Assembly: GCA_965644495.1 (NCBI GenBank)
Contig: CBFFSA010000001.1
Span: 1,612,001 to 1,676,000, forward strand
DNA: 64,000 bases
DNA from: Perkinsela sp. CCAP 1560/9
Lineage: Eukaryota; Protista; Euglenozoa: Kinetoplastea
Direction of reading: 5' to 3'
The notes under the pieces were generated by a model. That model was given only the letters and a program-made list of their open reading frames with translations, made no database searches and had not been told where the DNA came from. Made by a program: the position numbers and the translations under genes. This document shows positions 927-34,497 of the stretch, one piece after another; the first letter of the stretch is position 1, and every line of letters begins with the position of its first letter.

Positions 927-960
927 CAACAAGGTACAGAAACTGTATCTTTATCGTTTT
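927..960 (-). other. Spliced-leader (mini-exon) relic
   Basis: Minus strand AAAACGATAAAGATACAGTTTCTGTACCTTGTTG contains GATACAGTTTCTGTAC, the conserved 3' part of the kinetoplastid SL. It ends in TTG and is not followed by a GT donor. Confidence 0.75.
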
Positions 961-5000: not shown

Positions 5001-5230
5001 GCGCAACAGAATGCGAATCTTTTTCTCAAACTGGTCCAAATCTTCCTTGGGCATGATCTCATCACCCTCACCGCTCCGAAGCAAGGCTGCAATCTGGTCA
5101 GGATCGAGCGTATGTCTTCGCGCACTAAGTGTCGCCAGGTTGTCGGGTCGTGATGACGGTGATATAGAACGGCGTACGGCGTCGACAATATTTGGCATAA
5201 AATATAAAACTTGTGGTATCGTGTAGGTTG
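2060..5230 (-). mobile_element. VIPER-like YR retroelement copy 1 (gag + tyrosine recombinase), interrupted by Tc1
   Basis: Gag with zinc knuckle CYRCHKPGHFRANC (3094-3573; N-terminus 4800-5198). YR motifs WKAAARWTEV and FGTHSIKRGA. Homologous to 14460-16790. Confidence 0.8.
3689..4800 (-). mobile_element. Tc1/mariner (DD34E-type) transposon, 5'-truncated
   Basis: IWIDEK / QMDNATTH / PANSPDLNPIENVW. Terminus TA|CAGTGGTTTCAGTTG at 3689; the same end recurs inverted at ~61716-61850. Confidence 0.85.
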
Positions 5231-12717: not shown

Positions 12718-14090
12718 TTCAAGTTTCAAGTTTTGCCCAGCGCGTGCCCCTTGCAAAGTTCGCATTGCTGCTTGGAATGCAAGGGACACTTCTTCCCTAG
12801 GAAAGGTCACTGCAGGGGAGAAAGCCCCTGATGGGTCGTGCCACTGCTAGGAAAGAAATAATCTTCCCTACACAGGACCTTGCGCGTGGTAGGCATTTCG
12901 CCACTCCGCAGCAGCAAGGTGACTCCTCTCGCTGGGAGACGCCCGAGGACGCGACTTCCTCGTTTGCAGGCGTTGTACCTATCCGGCCACCCGCCACAAC
13001 GGCACAGACCCGCACTCCCTCACGTTAACAAAACTGTCCTCGGAGTGACACCTACCCTAGTTATCTGGTATCTTGTTACATGTATATATTAATACTGTTG
13101 CGGTGGTTGTAAAACTACCGCTCTACACTCGATTATTGAAAAAAAAGTGAACAAAAACAGTGAAAATATAAAGAGGAACACAGTAATATAATAGAAGAAA
13201 AAAATATAAAAGGGGGCTCCGGTGGTCCAAAACTGAAAAAATTTTTTGAAAAAAATGGGGGGTCCATGGGGGGGGGGCCAGGGGGGGGGGTCCAGGGGGG
13301 GGGTCCAGGGGGGGGGTCCAGGGGGGGGGGGGGCATGGTCGATCAAATTTTTTCGAAAAAATTAGTTTTCGAAAAAAAAACGCAGAAAGGGTAGCCGGGG
13401 TCTTGGCGCGCATTTTCCACCCCCCTACCCGGGGGTGACCCCCCCGCGTATCCGCAGGACGGGTCCGCCAAGTTCGGATTTTTTCGGAAAAAAAATTTTG
13501 AAAAAAATTTCAACTTGGCGAAAAAAATGACAAAAAAAATATTTTTCCAAAATCGTTTCCCCTATTGTATTTTGATAGTTTGGGACCTACACTAGCTTTC
13601 TACGCAGTTGTTTTCGCAAGGTATCACTTCTTCTAACTGTGGTGCGCCCCCCAAAATGACCCATTTTTGACTAAAAAAGGTGAAAAAGTATTTTTCGGAC
13701 CTAAAAGGGCATTTTTGTGTCGAAAGAATGGTATGGTTGGAGTCGCATTCTCTACCCAATACGTTCGGTAGGCTTCCATTCATGCCTGCGAGTGATTTCC
13801 CACGCGCAAATGTCGGATTTAGTGTTCTGAGAGCAAAAATATGCGAAAATGACCCCATTTGTACCCGAAATTCGGCTATTTTTGGCTATAATCTTTCCGT
13901 TTTCCAGGCTAAATTTTCTTTTTTAGGCTCTTCGTTAAACGCGGCGGTAGTTTTCAACGCGAAGCGCGCAGCATGAGTGACTTCTAAGTTGAAAGCAACC
14001 ACCGCGTTTAACGAAGAGCCTAAAAAAGAAATATATATAGTTACTGTATATTAATACTGTTTATTAGATACCGGGCGGTGTCACCCATTC
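12718..14090 (-). mobile_element. Structured SINE-like element D, interrupted at 13075-14061
   Basis: CAGGGG-CTTTCT-CCCCTG hairpin, (AACTTGA)2 tail at 12718-12734, and a split copy of the 40-nt repeat seen at 18261-18427. Confidence 0.6.
13075..14061. mobile_element. ~1-kb non-coding insertion with terminal direct repeats, G-run array and long hairpin
   Basis: TATATTAATACTGTT at 13085-13099 and 14047-14061; ~44-bp-arm inverted repeat at 13915-14031; (G7-10 TCCA)n at 13257-13333. Confidence 0.6.
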
Positions 14091-14459
14091 CGGCGAAAAC
14101 GGGGCGCGGCAGAGAGCGAAAGGGCGGCGGAGAGCGCAGCGAAGAGCGCAGCGCAGCGATAGCGATAGCGAAGTGGGGGTGAAGGGTAGGGCGAAGAGGG
14201 CTACTCGGGGGGGGGGGCGAAGGGGAAGACTGCCAGGAGGGCAGTGCTGGGGGTGAAAGGGGGTGCAGCGAAGAGGGGGGAGCGAGGAGGCGAAGGGGGC
14301 GAAAATGTTGGTGCAGAAGGTGGGCAAGGAGGGCGGAGAATTGGGCGGCGAGGAGGGCAGCCAGATGGGCGGCCAGGAGGGCGCGCGTGAGCGGTTCTTC
14401 TCCAAGGAGTGGTGAAAGGGGTCATTGGGAGGGGTCAAAATTAAAAAAAAGAAGGGTCA

Positions 14460-16790
14460 ACAAGGTACGAATTTATCACAGGGATAGACTTTTTCACATG
14501 TAAAGGCAAACTCATATCTTTTGACTTCGCTAGCCTCGAGCTACGTCGTGCACTAACAATGGAATGTCTACGGAGATAGGGTACTTCTTTGAAGCACTGC
14601 GCCACGTGTGATGATGTTAAAGAACCGGCAGGAGCGCTGATACTCGCTGTGTTCCGAGGGCTCGAGCTGTTGTAATGCTGCTCGCATTGTAGCGGAGCAG
14701 TGACTCGATGTTTTGATGTTTCGTGAGATTTTGTACCTCCTCCATACGAAGGTTTCCGCGTGCGATCTCGTGGAAAAGGTGGGTGATGACGCCCCTCTTT
14801 ATCGAGTGTGTCCCGTACCCTTGACCTAGAACGTACCCTTGACCTAGAATGGAATGAATTCGATGATCCATCTCGCGGACTGTCGTATGGCAGAACCTTT
14901 GTCCGTTGGTCATGGCCTGCACGTGTTGTGCGAGTTGCGGTGTCCCTGGGTCGGTTACTATGGCGGAAAGATACGGTCGAAAAGGATTTAGGCGTGTTGT
15001 CTTGGTGCCTCTTCCCCAATAAATTATTATCTCTTGTGTGCTTACACTCACGAATTGTTTCCTTCGTAGATCCGCAGTCTCGGTCCTTCGCCCCGCCACC
15101 TTCCAGCACAAGAGGCAACACATGCTCTCTTTGTGACTCAGTTGGCTTCTTAACTTTTCCAGCAGTATGGGAGTAATCGGTTCCATTTGACGCGTTGGCT
15201 CCAGTCCCCCCTGCGCTTGCAGGGCCTTTATATAGCTTTAACGGGGTTACCTCTTCCCCCATTAGCTGATACAAAGTTTTCAACCCCCTGCATAACCCAT
15301 GCGTGTCGAAGTCGCTAGAGGGAGAATCTCTAGAAAAGGAATTGCGTTTGTGGGTGTCGCCGACACGCCCTTCGCCGCGCAGTATTGCTGCATACGTAGC
15401 CATATTCGTTCCCGTGTGGTCCATGTGGCCGTGGCCCACATTGGTTCGAAAGCTTCGTTTAGTTGTAGCGTTCGTGGGTCGTTGGGGTGGAGGCGGAGGA
15501 TGGCGCTGAGAATGGCGTCCCGACTTTCGGTTGGTTTTGCTGTAGCGCGTGCGTCTGTGGCGGGCGGTCTTCTGGGCTGGTGGTCTGGAAAGGAGGTGGG
15601 AAGAGTCACGTGGGGGAGAAGATCGACTGGAGGAGGAGGGCGAAGGCACCGCAGCGGAGGATTTATTTTGAACGTTTGCTGTTTTGGGGCCGGAACGGTA
15701 GGAGCCCTTTGCCGCCTGAGGCAAAGAGCACGAGTAGTAGGGGTGGGGGGCATTCCCTAGTGGGAACCCCGTGTTACGCCGGTATAACGAACGGCGCCGC
15801 CCGCCACCCCTCCGCGAAAATCCTGATTCGCAGATGGGGTGGAGCGGAAATGGGTTTGGGTAGCATGGCCCATGTTTAGGCAGTCCGCTCGAATATGTCC
15901 CAGTTGGCGACATGAGAAACAGAATGGGCGACGATGGAAAGAACGAACTTGAGTACGAGCTCGGAGCTGCTCGTCCACCACCAGCTGGCCATAACGACCC
16001 TTGGGATCAACGTCACGATGTAGTCGCTGTTGAACTCTCTCAACGGCCACACCCGCAGCAGCCCAATAATGGTTCCGGAGCTCCTCAATTATGAGCTCAG
16101 CTATTGCGAGGTTATGCTTCTCCATCCAATCCTCCGTGTGACGTGCGGCGTAAATCCATTCAATGAGAACCGTGAAAAGACGTTCACGCTGCGGAGGAGG
16201 GTTGAAACGGACTCCAAGCAGCGGCGCCTCACGCAGCTCACGGATAAGTTCCCGAGGTTTGAACATATCATCCGTGTAAATCCACGGTTGCCACGTAACG
16301 GGGTCGTAGGCGGAGAAGCTTTTGGGGTCCGTGATTCGGATACGCTCGAAGGAGGGGAGTAAAGTTTCTGCTGGCTGGTCACCTGGCATATTAGCTCGAA
16401 CGCGGACCACAGTCAAGCTATGATATACGATGTCAGGAAGAGGGAAACGATAGTACGTGTTTACATCCCCATCCCATTCTGCGACCAGTTCCACGGAGGA
16501 TGAATCGTTCGGATACTTTAGGTGCATGTCCCCTACGACCGCCTGTCGTATGTTGTCGCCGGGTCGGGACCACACCGCCTCAACTTTAACTTCATAGTCC
16601 TTGCGCAAAAGTCCAACGACCTTGCTTATAAATTCTTCTTTCGCCGTATTCGTTAAAATACCATGGGCATTTTGATCTGAGCGCATAGCACGGCTTACAT
16701 TATCAAGGTCAAGATTGTCGTAACGCTGGGGCGAGCGGGAAGGCTCAACTTGGTCAGGGTTGAGCGTTCCTTGTCGCCGTGGGGGGGCAT
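14460..16790 (-). mobile_element. VIPER-like YR retroelement copy 2 (gag, YR, start of RT)
   Basis: Gag 15757-16686 with CFSCRQLGHIRADC. YR with YGTHSIKRG and TKH..LLRY. RT start MSLPLHVK. Confidence 0.85.
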
Positions 16791-17005
16791 CAATCTTTGG
16801 CGAGCCAGCGATCCATGCACTTGGTGACGAAAGAAGAATAGGTCATGTAACCCTTGCGACCACCACGTTTAGGGGCCGGTAATACGCACTTTGGTAGCAT
16901 AGCGAGGAGCGTCCAGGCTGCAATTGAATTTTCAACTACAGCTGACCTCAAGGTGTCAGTGAGTATTTCGGCCCACAGTTTACGGCACCGATGGGGCACA
17001 TCCTT
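16790..17005 (-). mobile_element. RLE non-LTR N-terminal fragment
   Basis: KDVPHRCRKLWAEIL..AWTLLAMLPKCVL; homologous to 26570-26700. Confidence 0.65.
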
Positions 17006-17090
17006 ACTTGCAAATAATAGGGGGCATACTTATAATAATAGGGGGCATACTTATAATAATAGGGGGCCATACTTGCAAATAATAGGGGGG
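17004..17090. repeat. ~21-bp tandem repeat
   Basis: Four copies of AATAATAGGGGG(CATACTT). Confidence 0.85.
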
Positions 17091-17449
17091 AGTAGTATTG
17101 AGTCTAACTTTTCTGTATCTACATTTCCAACTTTCCCACTTACTAGCACTTCACCCTTAGTAACCTTTCACCCTACTTACTTCCTGTAACCCTCTCATGC
17201 TATCCCTCCCTCACTCCCTACCCAACTGAACAACACTCTTATTTTTTAAATTAATAGGGGGGGGGAGAAGTATGAAACGCGGCATTGCCTCTATATTACC
17301 CAACACATGAACCATGAAGGTCCATAGGGGGGGTTGTCATGTTCCAACAGATATAATATAACTAGCAATTTGTGAGCCCAAAACTAGCAATTGTATGTAA
17401 ATCATGCCGCTAACATGAAGCAATAAAAATAAAAACAGAGAAAAAAGCA

Positions 17450-19380
17450 ATACAAGCCATTCGCGCAGGTTCCGGACCGGGTCTTTCGACCACTCCTCGG
17501 CCTGACTTGGGAACCCTTTCCTTGTTATACGGGAGGGCGCAGGCGCGGGCCTGTGCCGACAGCGGCACGGTCGCGAAACAGGGTGCTGGCCGACGGGGAG
17601 GAAGTTTTAGTTCCCGACCCATGTCCTACCTCACTTGGGGTACCTAGTCCTAGCGGGCTAGGCGTGAGCATAGACCCTGTCGGCATCGATCAGCATCCGG
17701 GCCGGCAGTTTGTTTTCCCATGGCCTACGTCACTACCATAGGGCCCGTTGGATCCGGCACGCAGATGCATGAAACCATCATTCTTGCTTGAGGACGCATT
17801 AAGGCAACGTTCAGCTCTGTAAGGAGCTCATTTTGCGCTTGACTGGGATAAAAGTTCTTTGGACGCGTTGGCCCGTTGCGTTCCAATATTCCGGAGAACG
17901 GAGAGTGCGCTTTCCCTCCAAGAGCCAAAGGATTCAACGACCATGGCTTCGAAAAGGTGTCCCGCCTCTTCCGCTTCTTGTCGCTGCCGCGCCTTCGTCT
18001 CGGCGTAATGCCCGGCAAAAGATACTGGCGTCACCCAGCTAGCAGTACGGACTGAGTCCAAGTACTTCATGTGCTGTGCATGTGTGACGGCAAAATCTAA
18101 TACCATGCCTTTCGCCAGAACCCCTTTCTCGAGAGAGCCAGTGGGCAGAAAAACATCTGCGGGTCTAGCGAGAGCGCCTCCTGGGCCACGGTTTCCCAGA
18201 ATCTTTTCTCTCTGTGGTTGAAGAAAGGCCTTGCTCGACACTATCGCTCTGAAATTCCAGCACCCGGCGTCAACAAAACGAGACGCTAAATAACTAGGGT
18301 GTTAGGAATCTTTTTGGAAAGAGACTGCCCGGTGCTAACATAACAAGGCACTAAACAACTAGGGTAGCCGTCTTTCTCGTGGTGAGCCACCCGGTGTCAA
18401 GATAACGAGACACTAGGCAACTAGCGTACGGTTCATCGGTGTTCTTAGTGCACGCCAATCAGTCGCTGACTCGATGACTTTTCTCGATTGGACTGAGCAC
18501 AACAGACACCAAAGTAATCTTGGAAGGGGCGCACCAGCCTTCTCTGGTGAGGCCATATCCCTAGTTGGACAAACGGCCTGACAAATAGAAATAGAAATAG
18601 AAAGGAAGTGTGCAGCCTTCTGCTGGACAGGTCCGATCTTCAGGGAAGACGTCCATTCCGAACCACCAACGCGATAGAGTCCGGAACTCGGTTTTTGTAA
18701 ATGCGTAGCCTCTGCTTTTTGAGGGTGTTACAAAGGCCCAGTTTCCGCCCCCCCCCCCCCTTCCCGATTGTGAAGCCCATCGGACCCTAGTTCAAACCAT
18801 CTGACAAACCATCTGACAAAAGCCAGCACATTGCCGTACTAAGGAGAGGGCGACCTGGGGATCTATCAATGTTGTGGCTTCTAATGTATCGCTAGCTGGC
18901 TCGATGGCGTAGGTCCTTAGAAAGTCCGTACAGTGATCCGCGGAGCCAACTGGAGTACCTAAGATGTCAAAATTGCCGTCATATCGTATTTTTTCGCTTG
19001 GTACATCGTGGAATAGGGTCGAGATATGAGGTGACGCTGGTGGGGTGATAATCTCGCACTTGGAGAGATTTAGGAAAAGTTCCCACTTTGGGCCGACCTC
19101 AGCGAGAATGTCAAGGGCTTTTCTGACTTCCAAGGGTTCCCCTACGAGCACCCCGTCATCGAGGTACCAAAGCTGAGTGAGAAGATGGGATCGGGATGCA
19201 ATATCCTTCGTCACCTCTGCCAAAACCAACGAAAATGACAGGGGACCCAAGGGATCTCCTTGCTGTACTCCTTCAGCTGAGGGGATAAAAGCACTGTCGA
19301 ATGTGAGGCAGCTGGGCTTCGCATAACACCACTCGATCCATGGGGAGAGTTCTGGAAAATGCTGGCGTTCAAGGAAGATG
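17450..19380 (-). mobile_element. CRE-like RLE non-LTR retroposon (RT, Zn finger, RLE, structured 3'UTR), internally deleted
   Basis: GVQQGDPLGPL, WYLDDGVL, EFRTLSRWWFG..CP, RPADVFLP..LDFAVTH, VVESFGSW. Confidence 0.85.
18250..18603 (+). mobile_element. Structured SINE-like element C with three tandem hairpin repeats
   Basis: 40-nt repeats at 18261, 18326 and 18388; CACCAG-CCTTCT-CTGGTG hairpin; terminal stem AGGCC..GGCCT; (AAATAG)3 tail. Inserted antisense into the CRE ORF. Confidence 0.7.
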
Positions 19381-19382
19381 AA

Positions 19383-19470
19383 AGTTAAGTTAAGTTAAGA
19401 TATCCCGTTTGGCCAACTAGGGCTAAGGGATCGTAGCAGGAATCTCCGTTACAGAGAAACCTCTACGTCG
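19383..19470 (-). mobile_element. 3' end of structured SINE-like element H
   Basis: ATCCC-TTAGCC-CTAGTT-GGCC-AAAC-GGGAT followed by a (TTAAC)3 tail; same loop and bulge as element C. Confidence 0.6.
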
Positions 19471-21324
19471 GTCTGAGTGGATGTTGAATCCTTTTCTCTT
19501 TTCTACCTCTACTCTCTCTCGCCCCGGCGCAAGCCCATGACCAGACGTCGGCGTGGCCACCGGGGATCCAAGGATTCCGATACTGGGATTAGCACCCCAT
19601 CATCCTCGACCTCAGGGGGACCTGCTACTACCCCTCTCAGGCGAGGCTCCAGCCCCCGCCCCTCTGTTGGGGTCGAGGAGCTGCGCCAGCTCTCTATCGA
19701 GGAGCTGAAGAAGGCGAGGCCGGACTTGGTCGTCCGTGTCAAGGAGCAGCACAAGTCATGTGCCTGCGACTTCTGTGGCCCCCCTTTCGTGCCAACCAGG
19801 CGGGACAACCGCCTGTGTGAGGAGTGCGTTACTCTGCGCTCTCGGCACAGGAACGACGTTAGAGTGCGTGCCTCGACGCAAGCCTCAGGGACCCCTCCAT
19901 CCCGTCCCATGTCTTCCTCTCGATCCTCCCGAGCCAACTCCACAGCCCGCAGGATCCCACGTTCTTCTTCCTCTCGGGGCAGATCCCGGAGCTTTGACCG
20001 TACAAGTACTACGGTCGCCCCGACCCCTATCCTGAGGAAAGCAGTCAACGTTTCCTTCGCTCCTTTCCCCACCCCCGACAGTCGGAGCACGTCATACGCC
20101 CGCATCTCGACGCCTGGCCTGGCGACCGCCCCCCCGATCACGTCGGACGCGATGGATAGCGACGCCCCCGCCCCGACGGAGCGTCCGCTGAAACTCCCCA
20201 CGCTAGCGCAACAATTCAAGGAGATGGACACTGTGCGCTTCAAACTCCTTCCCTCCCCTTCTAGCTCGGGGCTCCCTCTAGCCCAAACTGGAAGATGCTC
20301 TGTCTCTCTGCGTCTCCTCTCGGCCCTACACGCGGAGCACGAGAGGATCTCCCTTGAGGAAATGGAGGCCCGGGCACGCCGTGAGCTGACCCTGGAGGCT
20401 GTCAGTGGTCTGCACGCGGCCCAGAAAGCCATCGAGGATCGCTTTCTTCTGATCAATGCGGGCCATTTGGTCTGCATTGAATGTGGGGTAGCCCAACCCC
20501 ACCATGTAGCCCTACAGGCGCACCTAGTAAAGGTGCACGGTCCCAAGTGGCAAAGGAAAGCATCTATTGCCCTGCTAAAGGAGCATGCCCCGGAAGCCCT
20601 CTGGATCAAAACGGAGCGGTACGCCTCCATGATGGCGTACTATGAGAGGTTCTGCGCTGAGGAAGCCCGCCTGCGCATGGCCCAGGTCACCACTGTGGCT
20701 AAAGGACCTCCATGGCCCGTGCCCTCCTTACGATCCTTCCCTCTCCCCATTCCCAACTCCCCTCCTCCACCCTCTCCTTTCCCCCCATCTCTACCGGCGG
20801 ACAGGTCGGGCGCGTACCCGATACAGGCGAGAACTCCCATTGGGGAAGTCCCGGACAAACCATACGAGCCGGTAGGGGAAGAGGTCCACGAAATCCTCCT
20901 CGACATTGGCCCCGAGCGCCTGGGTCATATAGTCATCCCCTGCCCGCCCGAACGCTCGTTTCAAGCTGCTTTAAGCATTGTGGGCAACACTTTAGGGGTC
21001 CCCAGAGAGAGCCTGCTGCTGAAGGACATTTCCGGCGAAGCCACCCCCATCACCGACTCTGAAGGGCTGGACAGAGCGCAAAGAGTCGCGGTCAGCCTCT
21101 CCCTTCCCCCCTTTCCCCCAGGGCTTAGCGATGGGGCCACAGTCAGGGTGTATGACGGGACACACGACGGCATGGTCTCCGCCCCAGGGGTGAGTGCGGC
21201 GCACGACATCCCCGCCGGTCTGAACGAGGTCTTGGGTATCCCCCGGATCATGACCGGTGCCTGGGAGCCCCGCAAATACGAAGAAGGGCTCCTTTGATGT
21301 TTCCTTCCCACAGAAATCCTGGTA

Positions 21325-23722
21325 CTGTGACCCCCCCCTTTAATATGGACAGGGGGTATCCCCCCCCTTTATTGTGGACAAATCCGACCGTGCGCCGCGC
21401 AGCGGCGCCAATTTTTTTTTTTGACGTACCCTTTTTTTTGTCTCTTTTTTTCTGTTTTTTAGGGTATCTGTAGCTAGGTAATTTTATCAGCTTTCACATA
21501 GTTCGTCATGTTCATATATTTCAGTCATTTTTCAACCTAATGAATTCCGTGGAAGGACCCTTAACCTCTTGGATTAAGGCAACACCCCCAAAGCCACAGG
21601 TAGGTAATCCAACAATGTTGATTACAAATGAGCGCAATGTCCACGCTTCTTTAGATATCCACGTAAAGGAGAAAAGGGGACGAACTGAGCTTAATATATA
21701 CGAGAAGCGCGAAATCTGCCGATCGACTCTCTCGGTAAAAAGAATCCGAGAAAAATACGGAATTTCGCGAAGCGGAGTATATGAAATCCGTAGCCACGGT
21801 ATGAGCTACTTTCAAAAACTCATTGATCGTTCCATGGGGAGCAACCACAGGAATCGTGCTTTTAACGTTCGAGGAGGCGACTACAATGTTCCCGAAGCAG
21901 TTTGCTACAATAAGTCTGAGGCAATGGAACGGGTACACCGCTCCTGCGTTCAAGCCTCCTCGTTATGGTGTCCCTTCACCAGAAATATCGTCATCGACAT
22001 GATACGACAAAATACGGGATTGACTTCAATTAGTGCTTTGGAAGACACTTCTGCGAAGTTCAGACGGTACTATGGTTGGGTGTGGCGGCGGTGGGGCAGA
22101 ATACAGTGCTTAGCCCCCGCTGATGTGAACCTCAGAATTTCTCATTGGGCTGAAAAGCTCTACGTTCAAAACACAGTCCGTTGCTACCGTTTCGCGCTTT
22201 TCGGGGATGAAACCGCCATGTTTGTCAATGGAGAGGTGCAAGGGTACACACTTGCTCCGGTAGGGTGCCCGCAACCTAAGGTAGTGGATACAAACCCAAA
22301 GGAAACAGTAACCGCATTTCTTGCGGGCGTCTATGATTTAGGGGCCGGCGAAGTTTACCCGCTCCACCCGACTGTAATTTTTGAGCACGGAGCGAAGCGC
22401 AGAGAAAGCTCAACAATTTATTCGGAAATGACGAGTTACGCGAATAAATTGAAAGGGATATTTATTGATGTGAGCTCTTCTGGATGGGTGCGAGATGATA
22501 TATATCCCCGCATGATGCACCGATACTTGCCACTTACCCTGGAACAATCTTCAACGGCCATCGTTACTGACGACTTCACGGGGCATCGCACTGATGATAT
22601 TCCCGTCAACTGTGACCCGCACACAATTCCTGGCGGGTGCACGAAAACGATCCAAATTCACGACCGAGTATTCAATCGCCTATTTAAGAGGGCGTACAAT
22701 GAGTTGCTCAGTGCATGGCGAATACAGAACTCTTCGTGTAAGGTAACTCGTTATTTGGTGCTGGAGTGGATAAAAGAGGCCCATTCGAGAGTATGGGTAA
22801 AGCATCACAACACTATTCTTAACGCCGCCCGCAGGTACATCAAGCAACCAGCTACAGAGTATCCATGGAGCGAGAAGGATCCCGAAAGTGAACCAACCAG
22901 AAAAGCGAAAGCTGAGATAAAAGTCCGTGAGGAAATTTCACCACAAATAGAGTCTTCACGAAATGAGCCGATTGTTGTGCCGGAAACAGAGGAGACTCCT
23001 CCCACCCTGGTTGATACGTGGAAAAAATGAAGAGCTTCATGAGGAAATAATTGACACTCAAGATTGTTTAGGGCAACTAATGCTTCATCCAGACAATGAC
23101 CGCGGGGACATGGACACAGAGGGGTGGGATCAGTCAGTAGCGTGTGATGATACTTTTGAATTGTAAAAGGGCTGTTATTTTGTTGTGATAAGTTTACGTG
23201 GGTTCTTTTACGTGAGCTCTTAACGTTGGTCTTGTTTTTTCCCGTCGTGAACGTAAGTTCTTTCTTTCCACCTTTAGTTCATTTGTGTGAAACTTTGTAT
23301 GAGTAGGAAGTTTGGGCTCGATTTTTACGTTAGAACATCTACAATTTAACTGAATGGAACCTTTATAGCTACACGGAATATAGAGCTGAATGTGAGCATG
23401 CATGATTTTTTGCTTGTTGTTAATTTTTTATTCCTAATTATAGTGTACATCAATAATGTATATCCTCCATGTACCCTTCACCCTTATGAAGAAGTGCCCC
23501 TTCACCCCTCATTGACGCCCTCCTCCCCCGCCCTCTTCCTCTGCTCTCCTCGCCCTCTCTCCTGGACATGGATTTTACAAATTTGATTTTTTGTCGTATT
23601 ATAAGTAAAAAAGGTGCCGCGAAGCGGCGCCGAATTTTTTTTCACACCCCTTTCATCGCCCCCCCCCCCTTTATTATGGACAAAAGCCGAAAAAGTGTCC
23701 ATATTAAAGGGGGGGGTCACAG
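21325..23722 (+). mobile_element. Complete pogo/Tigger-like DNA transposon
   Basis: TIR CTGTGACCCCCCCCTTTAATATGGACA at both ends; TA target duplication at 21323-24 and 23723-24. Confidence 0.92.
21540..23030 (+). CDS. pogo-family transposase (intact 496-aa ORF)
   Basis: N-terminal HTH; GDETAMF, SSGWV, TDDFTGH, IPGGCTKTIQIHD. Confidence 0.85.
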   Translation: MNSVEGPLTSWIKATPPKPQVGNPTMLITNERNVHASLDIHVKEKRGRTELNIYEKREICRSTLSVKRIREKYGISRSGVYEIRSHGMSYFQKLIDRSMGSNHRNRAFNVRGGDYNVPEAVCYNKSEAMERVHRSCVQASSLWCPFTRNIVIDMIRQNTGLTSISALEDTSAKFRRYYGWVWRRWGRIQCLAPADVNLRISHWAEKLYVQNTVRCYRFALFGDETAMFVNGEVQGYTLAPVGCPQPKVVDTNPKETVTAFLAGVYDLGAGEVYPLHPTVIFEHGAKRRESSTIYSEMTSYANKLKGIFIDVSSSGWVRDDIYPRMMHRYLPLTLEQSSTAIVTDDFTGHRTDDIPVNCDPHTIPGGCTKTIQIHDRVFNRLFKRAYNELLSAWRIQNSSCKVTRYLVLEWIKEAHSRVWVKHHNTILNAARRYIKQPATEYPWSEKDPESEPTRKAKAEIKVREEISPQIESSRNEPIVVPETEETPPTLVDTWKK

Positions 23723-26569
23723 TAAGCGAAACGGGCTGGACCACCCGTGTTGTTCAATGCAACCTCCGCAGAGGCTGTATCGAGGCAAACCCAGGTCCAC
23801 GTTCTAAGACGAGGAGGGCCCGGAGGGAGACCCAAACTGTCCTTACCCCCGGCGCTACAACCCCTACCCCGGGTGGGGAAGGTACTATTATGGAGGGAAT
23901 CGCGGCCTCTACATCTCCTCGTAGCCCCTCCCGTCAGGAATGCGAGTGCCCCACCTCTCCTCCGCCGCCTTACCCCCATCTAGCTGGGACGGACCCCCCC
24001 TACAAGGCCCCCAGTGTCACGCCCCCCAATACCCAAGGCGCGGTGACGGAGCGGGGTGACATCACGCCCTCCCCGGACAGCCTGGCACAGCTCCTTGAAA
24101 GGGGCTCGCTGCGTACCCTATACGCAGTTCAATGCCCTGCCTGGAAGGATTACACTAAGTCTGTGTGTAGCAACTTCCTGGGGAAGTCGTATGAAGGCAA
24201 AATTAAGATCGCCTGGGATCTACTCCTCGGGGTTAAACGGTTTCTGTTTTTCCCCGAGGACAAACTGTCCCAGAGGCAGCTGGCTAGGGAGCTTCGCAAA
24301 CGGGCTCACCTCGAGGGGTCGGAAACCATAGCTCCGATCCCCCTCCCCACCAACAGCTTCCCCCGATCCGTCATCAAACGGGTAATAGAGCTGATTCGGG
24401 CGGGGGCTTTCTCCAGGGCGGCCAAAATTTTGGAAGCCCCCCTCGATCCGCCGGCAAATCCGGCGACGGCGGGGGAACAGGCGAAACGCCTCCACCCAGC
24501 GGGAGGTCCATGTAACACCCCCAAATTTGTCTATGACAAAGTCATACATTGACCCCTCCCGTCGGCGGCGGATGTTGCCCGGCAACAAGCCTGGCGCCGC
24601 TTAGAGCGCCAGGCCCGTCCGGATGGACAAAGGAACTCCTGGTCCCCATCCTTCAGGAGGACGACCCGAGGGACGTGGTCACTTGGATCATCCAAAGGGT
24701 CCTAACCAACTCCCTCCCCCCCACGATGAGGGATTTTCTCACCGGAGCAAACCTCAAACTTTTTCAATAAGCCTGGGGCCCCGGTGGGACATCACTCATC
24801 CTACAGGCCCATAGCCATGGGGGAGGTCCTACTGAAGCTCGCGGGGCTACTGGCCCTCGAGCAGGTCAGGGACCATCTCACAGCAGTGTTTCAGGGCCTT
24901 CAATTTGGAGCCCAATACACCCAAGGCTGTGAGCATGTCATATACGAGGTGAGAGATCACTTTCCTGACAGGCCTGACGAGGTGGTCGTGGCGGCCGACT
25001 TGGAAAATGCTTTCAACAGCATTTCACGCGCGGCCATTTTCCGCGCCCTAAAAAGGTACCCTAACCTATCCCCAATGATAGGGATCTCCCTTTTCGGGTT
25101 GCCTTAAGCTATGGGCATATCTCGACGATATAACCATAGCCGCGGAACCCGAGGTGTGCGTTAAGGCCCTTGGCTCCTTGGAAAAGGAGACCAAGTTTAT
25201 GGGTTTAAAGCTCAACATGGCCAAGTGCAAGGTGGCTACCCGCCACCCAGGCCTGTACTCGGCTTTCTCGGGGAGCCGGATGCAACACGGTCCGGGGGGA
25301 CTGAAACTTCTGGGGGCGTACATTGGCGCCTCGGAAGCGCGGGAAGAGGAATGGGTCCTCTCCAAGGTCCCCAAGGTCACTAATTTCTTGGGTAAACTCA
25401 AGGATTTACCCAGACAGTGCGCCCTCCCTCTCCTCCGCATTTGCGGGAGCCCCCGGTGGAACTACATAGTTCGCACGCACGAACCGGGGGTGACCAAAAA
25501 GGCAAACCTTCAGGTGGACGCGGCCATCACCGCATGCTCCGAAGCTCTTATCGGGGGGATGGGTGCAATGGGAACGACGCCGTTCGTAAATAAACTTTTT
25601 ACGGCGGACTTCCTGGGCACCATCCCCTTCGAAGACAAAGCGGAGGACATGCAGGCAATAGCAGTCAATGCCTTACAAGGCCAGCCCCCCGGCACCCCCG
25701 CCAGGGAGCAGAGACACGCCTATCGGGCGGCGGCTATGGACAAGGCACCGTCGGCCACGCATCTGGTCTGCATGCGCCAGATCCAGAACACCCACTCCAC
25801 CAAGTGGATGAACGCGTGGCCGAACAGGCCGGAGTACTACATGCGGGATCCCGAATGGGAGACCGCCGCTAGACTCCGGTACATGGTGGCACCCACCTCC
25901 GAACCAGAAATCCAATGTGTGTGTGGCGCGGCCCTCAAAAATGAGGAGTTCTGCGTCCACACCATGGATTGTAAAAAGGTTCGGGGGAAACACAAGCCTC
26001 TCGCCACAAGGGGGTCAAGGAAACTTTCCGCCTACCTACTAATCCAGTACGGATTCTCCCCAGACCTAGTCGAACCTAGATTCGATAACGGTCGGGGACC
26101 GGACATTTGTTTCCTTTTGGGGCGGAAACTAGTCCTAGTGGACGTGACGGTGGTAAACCCACTGGCCCCGTCCTACGTGGATAAGGAGGCAGCTGAGCCC
26201 TCCTTCACCGTGAGACAGGCTGAGCGCCTCAAAAGGCGCACTCACGAGGAAATGGCGGGGGCCAGGGAGATGGATTTCTTCCCGCTGGCCTTCACCACGT
26301 ACGGTGTCCCCGGCCCCGAGACCCTCCAGTTTCTAAATCTGGTCGCTCGGAAGGCCACCGGCGAGAAGAATGGTTGCCTCAGCCATTTTATCATGGCTAT
26401 CGGGGTAGCCATCCAAAAGGGGAACGCCCAGATAGCGCATACCGCGGTACAAAACTGGTACCGTAGGGGCGTGCGCTAATGGGCTCGGGGGACGACAAAA
26501 AAACAAAAAAAAAAAAGAAGATTGGATCCGCCGAACGAACGCGATCGTAGGTGGCAAGAAGCATGGCAA

Positions 26570-27480
26570 GAAGCCACCACGTAGGAGAGAGCCGTTGTCA
26601 ATATTTTGACCCACAACTGTCGGCATCGGTGCGGGACGTCCTTGCATGTGCTTATTGGGTTCGTACAAACTGTCTCCAGTGGTGGTAGGCTGTCTGTGCC
26701 CTGTACGTCATAGATGGCCTCGCCAAGGCACTCTAATGGCTGTGAGGGTGGGGGTGCTTTCACAACTTGCCCTTTGCAGTGCTTCGAATGTGAAGTTAAT
26801 TTGTTGACGTCGCAATGCCGACCGCATGCGTTGCAGTGAAATCGCCCCTCTTTTGCCCACCATTCGCTAGATATATTGTTCCCATGCCGATAAGCGACGT
26901 GGTTGTAGTAAGATTGCCATTGGCCTCCATGAACCGGGGTTGTCCAGATGCAGTTTTCTGCAGGGCACTCTCTTTGTCCAGGATGATATTGGGAGAAAAT
27001 AATCGCCGGAGCCCTCGTCTCCTGTATAATTTCAGGGGCTGAAACTTGTGTCCTCATGTCCGAGGGGTAGTCGTGGTATGATAGGTGTGGAGTGTTAGGT
27101 TCCGTAGGTTCCCCTTTTCTGGGTGTGGTTTTCTCTCGCCCTTTTTGATGGGATTTAGTGATTCCTCGAATGTGCCCTTTAGCGCTTGGAGGTACGGTAG
27201 ATGATTTGCGTCGAGCGAACTTTTTTATTACGGAGTCACCTTCAGACTGCGTCTCTTGGGTGCCATGGTCTGCTCTGGTGAGGACGCGTGAAGGATTGGT
27301 TTCCTCGTCGCCACCATCTTCATGTCCTGTGTCAGGTGTTTGTTTCTCGGTTGAAATCAGGGCAGCATTTTTGCACCATCCGTCTGGAATATTCGCAAGA
27401 ATGGGTGTTGTATAGATCAACTCGTTATACTTACTGTTTCCCTGAGCAAGGGAGTGGAACCAAGAGATGTACGCAAAGGA
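26570..27480 (-). mobile_element. RLE non-LTR N-terminal region with Zn fingers (likely 5' part of the 17450-19380 element)
   Basis: CPAENC..H....H, CNACG..H..HC, LPPLETVC..KDVPHRCR. Confidence 0.65.
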
Positions 27481-27489
27481 ATGGGACAT

Positions 27490-27700
27490 CCCCAGTCGCC
27501 GCATGGCGCTCAACCCATCGCTTTACAGTGCCTTCGTGCACTCCAAAGTTCTGAGCTGTTCGGGAGAAAGACTGTGTTTGCTCATAGTCTGCTACTAAAA
27601 GCATTCTATGACTCTCCTTGAGCTTTGCAGGAGAAGAATAGGATCGAGCAGAGAGTGCACCGCGCGATGTCCTCGAGCGAACTCGCTTTTGTGGCATAAA
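27490..27700 (-). mobile_element. Tc1/IS630-type HTH fragment
   Basis: TAQNFGVHEGTVKRWVERHAATGDV. Confidence 0.55.
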
Positions 27701-27942
27701 AAGGGGAAAAAAGAAAAACTGCAGAATTTTCACACAAAAAAAACAATGTTTTTTTCCACAGGATTAAATCGTTTAACTTGAGCGGTCCGAATAAGCCAAA
27801 GACATACAACTCTGAGAGAGCTCTCGAATGCGCTATTATTTTACAAAATTGAGCAAATTTTACAAATTTTAGACCCCCCAGGTTCAAGTACCACCCACTG
27901 TATGTACAAAAATATTGTGCTTCACTCGTCATGCATAGCATG

Positions 27943-28273
27943 TAGATTGTAGATTGTCCAGGCTTTTATCCTACGAAGGATCTAGCCTCCCCTGAGAAAG
28001 CAGGGGAACTTGGGGGAAGGTGCCTCGTCGCATGACTACCTAAACTCTTTCGAATTTGGTAATGGTATGCAAATCGCCGTGAAGCGACTACACACTTAGG
28101 TCCGCAGAGCGTAGGGCAACCTTCCCCGGGCACGTGGAGAGCTGAGCCCTCGCCATTCGGGACGAACTGGGTGTTACACCGGTTTGTCCCGAACGCCCCA
28201 CGTTTCCCAAAGAGAAAAGGAACCGGCTTGCTGGCACAGTTCGGGAGTGTCGAGTATTAGCTTCAACGGTTAG
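27943..28273 (-). mobile_element. Structured SINE-like element A
   Basis: 15-bp TSD GTCATGCATAGCATG (27928-42, 28274-88); (ACAATCT)2 tail; homologous to 31039-31383. Confidence 0.8.
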
Positions 28274-28625
28274 GTCATGCATAGCATGACCTTCAGACTC
28301 ACTCGAAACGAAATCATCACCGCTGGTATAGTCTGAGGGACAGCTGCTTGAACTCACACTGTCGTCGAAGTCATCTACGTCCGAGCCGTAGTACTCAAAA
28401 AAACACCCCAAGAGGTTGGAAAGCCGAGTTTGCCAAGCAATCTCTCGCCCGTTGAACGTCCCCCACGTGAACGTCCCCCAACTTCACACACTGAAGGGCC
28501 ACATTTCGCATCAATTCCAAGGAAGAAGCCCCAAAGTTGTAATGCTGCTTCCTCGCCCAGTCTTTGATGATGCGATGCGACCGTTCAGGGGTGTTAGTGT
28601 GAGAGTTCACAAACTCCACGCTATG

Positions 28626-29784
28626 GAGTCTGTGCAAGTCTTGGCTGTCACGAAACGCCACGAACTGTCACGAAACGTCACGCGCCGTCACGAAACGTCA
28701 CGCGTAGCCACATTATCTTGCTTTTTCAAGCTTTTTTAACAGATTTTTTGGAAACAAACTTGATTTGGAAACAAACATGTACTTATTTCAATGTCACTAC
28801 AATCGCCTATTCATCGGCAGCAGTGCCACGGAAAGTGTCCCGTTTCGAATCCTTGCAACAAAAATCCTTACTAGACGCTTGTTGATGAAAAAATACGATA
28901 GATCTTTCTCTCAACTCATCAATCGTTTTTCAAATGCGGTGTACCTTAGTGGGCAATTATATAGTGTCGTTCGTAAATTTTTTACAGGAGACTTGCGACA
29001 AAAATTGGGTTCTAAAATTACCTCCCGCCCAACATTTTGACTCAAAAACAAATTGAAAAATCTTAAAACTGTTTCAATAAACTAACTTTGCACTAAAGTC
29101 CTGACCCTAGATGATGCGTTTCCACCACTTATTTCACCTGAGGACATTTCCTAAGAGCGAAATGTTTGTTGCAATATGGCTGGAACGGCACTAAGAGCTT
29201 GACTCCCTTCACAATCGCACGGCCTAATCGTCCAGCTTTTCGCGTGGGCAAAGTCAGGTTGTGGAATCTTTCCATTCCCAGATGCTGCAAAGTCTTCGAG
29301 AGGCGGGATTGGATATCGAAGCATGCATGCTTCGGAAGGCAATGGAAATTTCGCTTTTCCCGGGAGCCCCGTCTTACTAGAGGACGGTAGGTTTCTGAAG
29401 CCCTTATTTGGTGACCCACAAGGCGCGCTCGATCAATACGATGGATTGTATTGTTATGTAGCGCATTATGGTACAGAGATTCAAGAGGATAACAGAGCCC
29501 GTCCTCATCAATTACTGCGGGGTCGCACGTTTCTCATCTTCGCTGCCGATATCACCATGGATGACGTACATCACCATGGACGACAGTCACTGGGTTGTTG
29601 TGTCGCCGCAAATCAGAGAAATGTATTTTGATTGATTGAGGCGCTCGGCACTGACAAGTGTCAAGTAAACCTCGATCTTGACAGGCGCCAAGTAAACCTC
29701 GATCTTGGTTGTCACGAAACGTCACGAGCCGTCACGCGCCGTCACGAAGCGTCACGAAACGTCACGCGCCGACTGCACAGACTC
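28626..29784. mobile_element. Non-autonomous TIR element with subterminal GTCACGNNNC 10-mers
   Basis: TIR (G)GAGTCTGTGCA; TSD CTATG (or TAT); six 10-mers at each end. Confidence 0.8.
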
Positions 29785-31038
29785 CTATGATTCACAGCGT
29801 GGTGGCGACAAAAGTCCCCCAGAGTGGAATACGCCCCCCAACGGTCACTGACAACCACAGCCCGTGCACTCGTCAAGTGCGGCAGGATGAAGTTATGCAG
29901 CGTTTCCGTGTCTCGGCGCTTGACCAACTTCCAATGGGTTCTTCCCATTTCTTGTCCACGGATCTCCGTGACGGTGGCAAACCACCATCCCCTTTTCCGC
30001 TGCCGCCTCCCACGCTGATACTTTCTCTTTCCAATGAACGTTTCGTCCACTTGGATGCGAGAAAACTCGTGTTGCTCGGACTGCTCTTGGGAAAGCGCAG
30101 CATTGGCCGCGGAGTGTAACACTTCCTGGACAATTTTTCTACCCACCCCTCGGCTGTGGCAGATTTGGTCAGTACAAAGCTGATTCGCAATGTCTGCCCA
30201 AAGAAGTAAAAGGATGGTGGGAGTTAGATGGCTTCGCAAAGAAGCCCCATGTTTATTTGACAGGGGTTCCGCATTCCAGGATCCTTAAACATACAAATCA
30301 TATAATTCTTCCCCGGTACGGACGCCATCTTTTCCGTTCCATGCTTTCGGCACGATGGCGGAGTCAAAAAACCATGGCAGTTTATCCAGCTTTCGTCATC
30401 CGCGCCAAGAGGAATGTCTTGCATACTGCGCCAACGCTTGACACAGTTAAAAGCAGGGCGTCCGTTACAAAGCGGGCGCAACGGCACATCACGCCATAAA
30501 GTTGGGTTGAGGTAACGTGGGTCAGGAGGTACTGCCGGGCCATCTCCTAGAGGTCCTCGCCGGTGTTCTCGGTACGAGAACACCTCGAGAAGAGAAATGA
30601 AACTTCAGAAAAGAGCGTCAGGATCCTGCTGATTGTTGTTGTTATTGTTCATGATGAAAAGCAGAACTGAATAAAAAGGAAGCACTGAGACTAAAAAGAA
30701 TGGGGTTGATCGCATGTTCGTTGAGTCTTTCGCAACATAGGAAAACAATCCTTTCCTGCGAAAGTACAAAATGGGGATCACCAGTCCCACACCTTATAAT
30801 TTCGAGCACTAACGAACAACCGAAGGAGCACAAGACAAGTTACAATTTAATGGAGCTATTTTTCTTTTTGAAAAAACATCGGAAACGGACATCCGAACTT
30901 TCTACCAAACCCCGTTCCGGGTTAATGTACCTGTAGCTCGATATTGTACCGGGGGGGTACAATAAGTGGGAACGCTTGGTTTTATTGTACCCCCCCCTGC
31001 GCAAAATTTAATTGGGTCGGCAGGATTATTTTTCGTTG

Positions 31039-31383
31039 AGATATGGTAGATGATATGGTATAAGGCTTTGTATCCCGTAAAGGGGTGTTGCCTCCCCGGA
31101 GTAAGCCGAGGTAGCTTGGGGGGAGGTCGCTACTCAAAGGTGAGTTTTCACTCGCCTCGGCCGCTGAACAATCCTAATCCTTTTGGGCTAGGACTTCGCA
31201 TTGTAATCATACAATTACGTACGAGTGTTCCACACGTCCTAGTGTCGCCTCCTCCGGGCACGTGGAGAGCTAAGCCCTCGCGATTCGGCAAACTGGGTGC
31301 CAGCCCTGGTTCATTCCGAACGCCCCACGTCTCCCGAAGGAGAGATTAGCTCGAACGGCTTGCTGGCATAGTTCGGGAGTCTC
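31039..31383 (-). mobile_element. Structured SINE-like element B
   Basis: Aligns to element A with compensatory stem changes; UUCG and GAAA tetraloops on the minus strand; TACCATATC tandem tail. Confidence 0.75.
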
Positions 31384-31725: not shown

Positions 31726-32075
31726 CTTAGCTTCAACGGACCAAGTCTTCTAGGGGATTATACCCTCGAGCGGACTGGCTCCTCAGCTTCAAAGGGATTC
31801 AAAGGCAGCTTCAAAGGGCTCCTCAGCTTCAACGAGCTCGTAGCTCTCCGAATTCTGACCCTAACCCCGTTATCATGGGCTAGTTGCAAGCCGCACCAAA
31901 GGATGAAGAAAAAAAACACTCCAAAGTTTAGCGTGGATGGCGCATAAGTCGTTTTATGCGTTTTTATAGTTTAATTTTCGTCTACCTTTTGTCTTTTTAC
32001 GAGGGGCCGTTTTTAGTCTATAATCATCGATTAGTATCTATCAGCATCGATTAGTATCTATCAGCCTTAGTATCT

Positions 32076-32785
32076 ATCCCACCTGTGTTTTGGTTTTCTT
32101 TGTGTTGATCGTTATTCCCCATCGGTTAATTGTTTGTAGTGTATCATTTATCGTGCTTTGCAAATCGTTGTGATCATCTGACCAAAGGACAAGGTCATCT
32201 GCGTACGCAAGCAGTCCAAAGACATCGATTCCCGTTACTCTGTCGCCTCGATTGATCATTCCTCTGGGTAACCGCCGCTGAATCTTTATTCCTGGGTTAT
32301 TAAACTGTGTGGCCTTTCCTAATGACTGATTCAAAAATTGCATTGAATATAATAATATAATCTAATATGTTCTACAACATACAATCTAATATGAAGCTCT
32401 ATGTTATGATATGAACATCCTGAATCATTGAATCATTGATATGAACAACACTATCAATGTTCTACAACATACAATCTAATATGAAGCTCATGGGACATGC
32501 CTGTTTGAGCCCATCGGCTATCTCTATTTTTTCACTCCTAGTACCGTCGCTCATCACGACGCTTGCAGTGGTTCTAAAGCATGTTGCTTTTATGAGTTCC
32601 AATAGGTGTCCCCCTATTTGAAGTTTCTTGAGAACCGCCCAGGCTGCTTCACACGGCATTGTATCGTAGGCTTTTCAAGGTCTAAGTAAGCGAGATACAA
32701 CGGCAGGTTGTGCTTTCTTACTTCCTCGGTGACTCTTCTGAGAGTAAAGACGGCATCGTCTATACCTCTCTTTTTTGGGCGAAGG
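32076..32785 (-). mobile_element. RTE-like (APE-class) LINE RT fragment
   Basis: DAVFTLRR, YLDL-KAYD, GLKQACPMS, LAYADDLVL, INTKKTK. Confidence 0.8.
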
Positions 32786-34108: not shown

Positions 34109-34497
34109 GAGCGGAGGTGGCGGAGTGGCAAGAATTCAAAGTTTGAAGCACATGGTGCTCAGACGGCGAGTTCAAACCCGCTCATCGCAATATTCCTGGC
34201 GGCCTCACTCCAAGAGGCTGGGCTGATAACCGACTAGGCCCAGTACTCGGAGGACCGTCCCGGACCCTCCCCTCAGGGAACCAGCTCCCTTACCCGGCTT
34301 ACACCTCTTGGGTAAGCCGTGTTGACGTACAGTTCGTCGACGCAGCGTGTTGGTAACAACACGTTCGTGCCGCCTTGGACAAGTGGAAACTGGTAGAGGA
34401 CGTCGGCCTCGGAACTTCCAAATCTGTCTGTGAAGGGTCTGGCTTGCCAGTGACCATCCGGAGCGATCCGGAATGATTTGGATTTTTTGGATTTTTT
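34109..34497 (+). mobile_element. tRNA-headed SINE (element E)
   Basis: A box TGGCGGAGTGG, B box GAGTTCAAACCC, hairpin-rich body, GATTTTTTG-type tail, 12-bp TSD TAGCATTTCTAG. Confidence 0.8.

Follow-up and report, generated by a model that had tools for sequence, protein, structure and literature searches.

What are the five inserts that lie scattered over positions 12718 to 31383 of a 64,000-nucleotide stretch of the Perkinsela sp. CCAP 1560/9 genome, and why do they end in similar hairpins and short repeats? The stretch, called the window below, is contig CBFFSA010000001.1, positions 1,612,001 to 1,676,000 (G000:C1:1612001-1676000 in our numbering), from an assembly of 21 Mb in 110 contigs; other loci of this assembly are given as L numbers. 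A sequence-only reading had joined the inserts, named A, B, C, D and H, into one family of retroposed structured RNAs. This single family did not hold, as by alignment A and B are truncated 3' untranslated regions (3'UTRs) of long interspersed elements (LINEs), and C, H and D are truncated short interspersed elements (SINEs). Our explanation, which we consider probable, is that all five are dead-on-arrival copies carrying a two-hairpin module that would be recognised by a LINE reverse transcriptase (RT). Searches of the whole window with Rfam at gathering threshold and with ARAGORN returned nothing, and the inserts are therefore not known RNA genes. A six-frame search with PF00078 gave more than 1000 RT candidates in the assembly, so this genome is packed with retroelements.

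Results and Discussion

The five inserts carry the marks of retroposition

Every hairpin and stem string quoted in the sequence-only reading was present exactly once and where it had been placed: the hairpins of A (27989-28006, minus strand), D (12813-12830, minus), C (18532-18549, plus) and B (31095-31110, minus), and the terminal stems of C (18558-18579, plus) and H (19402-19423, minus). A tandem tail, claimed for each insert, was called by Tandem Repeats Finder in four, as (TTCAAGT) x2.3 at 12718-12733 in D, (AAATAG) x3.5 at 18583-18603 in C, (AAGTT) x3.6 at 19382-19399 in H and (TGTAGAT) x2.4 at 27941-27957 in A. For B the program called none; its end holds a 12-nt unit repeated, imperfectly, just 1.7 times or so. 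The 15-bp target-site duplication (TSD) of A was also found, as an exact 15-mer on the minus strand (CATGCTATGCATGAC) that occurs twice in the window, at both ends of A (3' copy 27928-27942, 5' copy 28274-28288); no such repeat is expected there by chance.

The inserts are retroposed elements, as had been proposed, with TSDs, truncated 5' ends and tails of microsatellite repeats. Signs of target-primed reverse transcription are, besides the TSD of A, TSDs of 7-14 bp in seven copies of the SINEs described below, a 13-bp TSD at the LINE of L078, and 5' ends that vary among copies: upstream of the landmark 'ACTCCCGAAC', A starts at about 35 nt, its 90% identical relative in L002 at about 10 nt and B at about 3 nt. 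Counting hairpins whose stem has 6 bp or more and whose loop reads C[CT]T[AT][AC]T, we found five in the window, four of them those quoted above, as compared to a mean of 0.78 in shuffled sequence (0 of 200 block shuffles reached five). Single-sequence folding gave two adjacent hairpins as the minimum-energy structure of A, B and C, and a related two-domain shape for D and H.

A and B correspond to LINE 3'UTRs

Insert A (27943-28273, minus strand; 331 bp) has its first hairpin (HP1) at 27989-28006, its second (HP2) at 27960-27988 and the tail (ACAATCT)n at 27943-27957. We found 21 relatives of A in the assembly; their alignment shows a single family, about 300-330 nt long and divided into subfamilies. 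Some 300 nt of A can be aligned with the 3'UTRs behind the RT open reading frames (ORFs) of L010, L011 and L077. Insert B (31039-31383, minus strand; HP1 31094-31111, HP2 31063-31093), with its imperfect tail, belongs to a sister subfamily; it matches A at 80% identity along 139 nt of the 5' end and at 75% along 65 nt of the 3' end. In L010, L011 and L077 an RVT_1 ORF stops about 165 nt upstream of the A/B-type 3'UTR. By this arrangement, A and B are 5'-truncated copies in which nothing but 3'UTR is left of a LINE superfamily that encodes an apurinic endonuclease (APE) and an RT. It had been asked whether longer copies would reach an RT ORF or a tRNA head; the RT ORF is there, upstream of the A/B-type 3'UTR, and in four full-length SINE loci ARAGORN found no tRNA head.

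C, H and D belong to a SINE superfamily with exchangeable tails

The remaining three inserts are, as judged by alignment, 5'-truncated copies of one SINE superfamily. Its members have a fixed, non-tRNA head of about 100 nt that begins with GTCAGGGC, followed by one to four hairpin-repeat units of about 65 nt and a LINE-derived tail. The head occurs in at least 40 places of the assembly, and in ten further loci elements start precisely at GTCAGGGC and hold one to four of the hairpin-repeat units. Five tails were seen: the H type, the C type, CTCGTT/(TAACAA)n, CCCGG-CTATCT/(AATC)n and (CAT)n.

Insert C is limited to 18238-18603 (plus strand), as the sequence upstream is a different, abundant repeat. 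It consists of a body of the 65-nt hairpin repeats (about 18254-18437) and a LINE-derived tail from about 18428, with HP1 at 18532-18549, HP2 at 18550-18579 and (AAATAG)n at 18583-18603. C is 96% identical to L023, a fuller copy with the SINE head, and over its last 173-178 nt it matches the 3' end of a LINE, present in L046 and L078, at 94-96% identity. The tail thus comes from a LINE.

Insert H (19383-19478, minus strand) is a 96-bp 5'-truncated copy of a SINE family of about 340 bp, with a long hairpin at 19432-19467, HP2 at 19402-19431, the tail (TTAAC)n at 19383-19399 and a fold z-score of -3.97. The full-length copies, in L062-L067, are 94-96% identical, about 340 bp long and flanked by TSDs; they start with GGTCAGGGCGTCCGATT and end in (TTATC)n. 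The truncated end of H is abutted by an element on the plus strand, from 19479 onward, with a 606-aa ORF (19477-21297). Two relatives of this element, in L060 and L061, have a spliced leader (SL) 3' end directly before the same sequence, and the window copy lacks it.

Insert D (12718-13062, minus strand) is the 3' part of a copy, with a body at 12827-13062, HP1 at 12813-12830, a branched second domain at 12738-12812 and the tail (AAACTTG)n at 12718-12733. Its body is 91% identical to a copy in L074 whose 3' end differs, and its last 57 nt recur alone in L075; this 57-nt fragment was the only further match in a search with the 3' module of D. The 3' half of a hairpin repeat, at about 13040-13075, aligns to the repeat unit, and the probable 5' half lies upstream at 14071-14091 (minus strand), where the sequence agrees with positions 193-214 of the L117-type SINE in 20 of 21 nt. 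As the body is like that of L074 and half a hairpin repeat lies upstream, D is placed in the same superfamily, with a rare tail. The two halves of the repeat are split by an insertion of about 1 kb (13063-14070), which holds a 13-nt G-rich array (GGGGGGTCCAGGG x5.5, 13257-13329) and A/T-rich runs.

SINEs of this superfamily exchange their tails. L117 and L120 are 92% identical over 389 nt, comprising head and body, and unrelated thereafter; the modular system that had been suspected is therefore present, as one head and body on two unrelated tails. L074 (G000:C1, about 2.50 Mb) is a stack of elements in which two SINE copies, oriented opposite to each other, have the same head and body and carry different tails. 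A D-like body begins there exactly where the (TAACAA)n tail of one SINE ends, which suggests insertion into existing tails.

The head is not that of a classical SINE, in which a tRNA-, 5S- or 7SL-derived RNA polymerase III head holds an internal promoter. ARAGORN found no tRNA in the full-length loci L062, L023, L063 and L064, and Rfam at E<=1 gave no source for the head in such loci, only spurious microRNA hits elsewhere in them. We also considered that these SINEs could be bipartite, internal-deletion derivatives of LINEs, and rejected this as neither head nor body was matched in L077, L078 or L113, 5'UTRs included.

A two-hairpin module is maintained by compensatory changes

The module spans about 54 nt, in which HP1, a 5-6-bp hairpin with a pyrimidine-rich hexaloop, abuts the bulged HP2. 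The latter has two stems, closing and inner, and its 3' bulge is rich in A. A plain pattern was too narrow to follow it and a covariance model was needed, since the exact terminal motif of C and H occurs 12 times genome-wide and, with one mismatch allowed, the count equals that of the reversed-pattern control. We therefore built R1 from 17 aligned modules of A, B and C type, as a 6-bp hairpin followed by a hairpin with outer and inner stems, and searched the 21-Mb assembly, where 150 of 5031 candidates were scored. The genome-wide search for one shared module succeeded in part: R1 matched A (64.9 bits), B (60 bits) and C (64.9 bits) and gave at least 85 sites at E<=1, but H and D were unmatched. 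Most sites belong to new families (20-52 bits) and they comprise at least 12 sequence variants with compensatory stem changes, each variant 2-4 nt before its own short tandem repeat; these repeats include (TTCA)n, (ATCACT)n, (TCTA)n, (AAATAG)n, (ACAATCT)n, (CAT)n, (AATC)n, (TAACAA)n, (ACATA)n and (CAA)n.

The hairpins could be passive, with 3' ends that are alike through common LINE ancestry and a protein that recognises the tail repeat or another feature in place of the stems. The loops and the AGGC...GCCT outer stem are indeed conserved in sequence, A/B-type 3'UTRs can be aligned over about 300 nt, and related sequences may exceed shuffle controls without any structure. Still, in the model-based alignment A2 (52 sites, 42 distinct rows) 85% of cells are paired and 10 of 16 pairs have changed on both sides with pairing kept. 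The covariation score was 0.296 as compared to 0.152 in shuffles (0 of 500 reached it) and at most 0.127 in slid registers, far lower than in the true register. For HP1, 98% of cells are paired, and one of its positions is occupied by GC, AU or UA. Outer stems as different as AGGCT/AGCCT, AGGCG/CGCCT, AGGCC/GGCCT, AAACC/GGTTT, AGACC/GGTCT and AGGGTA/TGCCCT, and ATCCC/GGGAT in H, were found, and unrelated ones among them (AAACC/GGTTT, ATCCC/GGGAT, AGGCC/GGCCT) enclose the same loop and bulge. Moreover, exactly this terminal segment is kept in SINEs with unrelated bodies. Passive hairpins are for these reasons unlikely; the compensatory changes that had been proposed for a LINE/SINE 3' module are real, and the module is conserved in its structure. 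Conservation in structure rather than sequence, as the claim had run, goes too far, since the loops and one outer stem are conserved in both.

Several points weigh against a common module with a role in recognition. We infer this role from covariation and position. A2 was fitted to R1, which biases its pair counts towards structure, and therefore two independent checks were made. Single-sequence minimum-energy folds gave the same two hairpins in about 35 of the 42 variants, and an unfitted MAFFT alignment with RNAalifold recovered HP1 and the inner stem of HP2, and did not recover the HP2 outer stem. As the module is largely conserved in sequence, part of the signal reflects common descent. 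R1 matches neither H, which has only the HP2 architecture in common, nor D, with its much larger second domain. Within the sequence examined we found no LINE with an H-, A- or D-type tail, and the SINE head has no tRNA or Rfam match that would account for its transcription.

H and D are nevertheless linked to the other modules by shared parts. HP2 of H has the loop and bulge of C on different stems, and the L074/L117 type, matched by R1 at 30-31 bits, bridges H and C. In D all six pairs of HP1 are flipped relative to A, and the larger branched domain follows.

Partner LINEs encode endonuclease and reverse transcriptase

The LINEs are about 3.4-3.8 kb long, with an ORF of about 950-1050 aa that combines APE and RT, and a microsatellite tail; no Pfam match to RNase H was found in their ORFs. 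L077 has an open 958-aa ORF (RVT_1, E 2e-32) whose N-terminus is 34% identical to the APE region of L078 and whose protein has a 99% identical counterpart in another public assembly. The partner of C is a full-length LINE in L078 (1743-5540; G000:C29), with APE and RT ORFs in different frames (Exo_endo_phos, E 7.6e-6; RVT_1, E 2.7e-31) and a last 178 nt that are 94% identical to SINE C. Its 5' end is a copy of most of the SL (CTTTAACGATAAAGATACAGTTTCTGTACCTTGTTG) followed by a T run, and its 13-bp TSD is AGCGTCTGTTGAG. With a single APE+RT ORF, about 3-4 kb, a short repeat tail and no RNase H match, the label 'RTE-like' fits on architecture. The nearest named homologues outside are annotated like RTE-derived genes, at 24-28% identity.

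The sequence-only reading had also proposed that the LINE copy at 32076-32785 of the window possibly mobilised the inserts as one family. A tblastn search with the L077 ORF placed an RT fragment at 32080-32775 (minus strand), interrupted and 3'-truncated, in three pieces that are 51-71% identical to aa 512-700 of the 958-aa protein. The fragment thus belongs to the right superfamily, that of a LINE with a 3'UTR related to A and B. However, the same search found nothing that matches aa 700-958 or the 3'UTR, so this copy, a truncated RT piece, cannot be the mobiliser and was rejected as the source element. As the inserts derive in addition from at least two LINE subfamilies and three SINE tail types, a single family mobilised by this copy is very improbable, and for this copy it is refuted. 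We also asked if B and the fragment could be one LINE copy, and rejected this as the upstream flank of B leaves the LINE alignment and tblastn did not detect aa 700-958 in between. The broken end of the fragment directly borders a 20-nt tandem repeat (TCTATCAGCATCGATTAGTA x2.5, 32017-32078).

A possible mechanism

Taken together, our results are best explained if the five inserts were made by target-primed reverse transcription and were dead on arrival. The LINE protein would bind the module on its own RNA, or on the RNA of a SINE that had borrowed the module, and reverse transcription would start on the terminal repeat, where slippage would change the number of repeat copies. The differing stems and loops may then act as partner codes between LINE lineages and SINEs. 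Binding to the module and priming on the tail repeat are modelled here on LINEs of the stringent type (PMC4176376, PMC1636434).

Possibly, the module serves the formation or stability of the RNA 3' end, for example as the transcript end of elements that have no poly(A) tail, and not recognition by the RT. The fixed distance of 2-4 nt to the tail would suit such a role. Kinetoplastid transcripts are processed from polycistrons, so an end signal encoded by the element itself could be of use. On the other hand, when SINEs take the module from LINEs, the matching tail repeat comes with it, as it should for a recognition tag, and in stringent-type LINEs such stem-loops are shown to be bound by the protein (PMC4176376). 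One module could have both roles, and as a replacement for recognition by the LINE protein we regard 3'-end formation as improbable, somewhat more so than passive hairpins.

Spliced leader and other elements of the window

The host has a leader of kinetoplastid type, which ends in ...CAGTTTCTGTACCTTGTTG and is followed by GTATGAG in the SL RNA gene array of L021/L076 (G000:C1, about 661-664 kb), where gene copies are spaced 297 bp. The same locus holds a LINE 3' end of the L006 type (R1, 65 bits) and a D-like piece (72% over 140 nt). An SL-headed origin of the five inserts was considered and rejected, as A, B, C, D and H all start without SL. The SINE superfamily as a whole has no leader at its head either, though the LINE partner of C does. 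An SL relic (CGATAAAGATACAGTTTCTGTACCTTGTTG) is found in the window at about 927-945 (minus strand), followed by AATTATTTTCC. The identical junction recurs in L037, L045 and L049, and the relic is therefore probably the head of another leader-capped element.

A separate SINE lies at 34109-34497 (plus strand). It has a tRNA-like head with A- and B-box-like motifs, not called by ARAGORN, and a 12-bp TSD (TAGCATTTCTAG); near its 3' end are two small hairpins of a different type, and its tail is (TTGGATTTT)n. Two ORFs encode DNA transposases, one Tc1/mariner-like with DDE_3 and HTH_Tnp_Tc3_2 (4032-5198, minus strand) and one pogo-like with DDE_1 (21540-23030, plus strand). For genomes of the kinetoplastid type, a 2021 paper presents Merlin as the first DNA transposon to be reported (PMC8101967).

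Relation to known LINE/SINE pairs

Clades with related features are known from other hosts. CR1 LINEs carry a hairpin and an octamer microsatellite at their very 3' end, and their copies are heavily 5'-truncated; clade and hosts differ from those described here. In stringent-type LINEs the protein binds a 3' stem-loop that its own RNA and the RNA of the partner SINE both carry (PMC4176376, PMC1636434). The features of such pairs are found here as well, namely SINE-LINE 3' homology, a partner with endonuclease and RT, the marks of target-primed reverse transcription and a compensated stem-loop before terminal repeats. As in UnaL2/UnaSINE1 of eel and ZfL2-1/2 of zebrafish, the tail of the SINE and the 3' end of the LINE have almost the same sequence (PMC1636434, PMC4176376), a conserved, lineage-specific stem-loop stands just before short tandem repeats, and TSDs and 5' truncation occur. 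Unlike these, our elements have two abutting hairpins instead of one stem-loop, a LINE with a single APE+RT ORF and a kinetoplastid-type protist as host.

SINE tails that derive from LINE 3' ends and can be exchanged are well known from animals (PMC5786205). RTE LINEs and their SINEs (Bov-B/Bov-tA and others) share with our elements one APE+RT ORF, absence of RNase H, a tail of microsatellite type, partner SINEs and the exchange of tails (PMC5786205). Identity to the best outside homologues is no more than 28%. The likeness to RTE is one of architecture, and Vingi, which is related to Ingi and of similar size, may be an alternative clade (PMC5786205). The SINE head and body had no match in the compared LINE loci, 5'UTRs included.

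The closest comparison by host is with the elements of kinetoplastids. Among these, ingi and L1Tc have RNase H as well as poly(A) tails, and RIME and NARTc arose by internal deletion. Our elements differ from ingi and L1Tc in their microsatellite tails, the stem-loop module, the lack of an RNase H match and SINEs with foreign heads. What they have in common with ingi/RIME, L1Tc/NARTc, SIDER and CRE/SLACS is the host group, in which APE-type (ingi) or site-specific LINEs occur with non-autonomous derivatives (PMC12278014). A survey of kinetoplastids, Bodo saltans included, lists only the CRE, INGI, TATE and VIPER clades of retrotransposons (PMC12278014), and a full-text literature search found no report of such 3'-tagged LINE/SINE pairs in this group. 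The mode of recognition is thus known from animals, and its probable occurrence in a kinetoplastid is, as far as that search could tell, new.

As a more tentative suggestion, and one that we think rather doubtful, this genome could hold a natural stem-swap series. One LINE superfamily would then have a dozen or more 3' partner codes, and one SINE superfamily with a non-tRNA head would survive by exchanging its tail to match the LINE lineage that is active. Both the LINE clade and the true SINE class would then be new to the kinetoplastid record.

For annotation, the five 'structured RNAs' are to be masked as LINE and SINE fragments and not entered as RNA genes. With many module variants, swapped SINEs and apparently intact LINE ORFs in one genome, these elements offer a comparative data set for how a LINE RT chooses its template. 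They also add LINEs with a stem-loop and a microsatellite tail, and SINEs built of a head and a tail, to a group that has been described with four retrotransposon clades only (PMC12278014).

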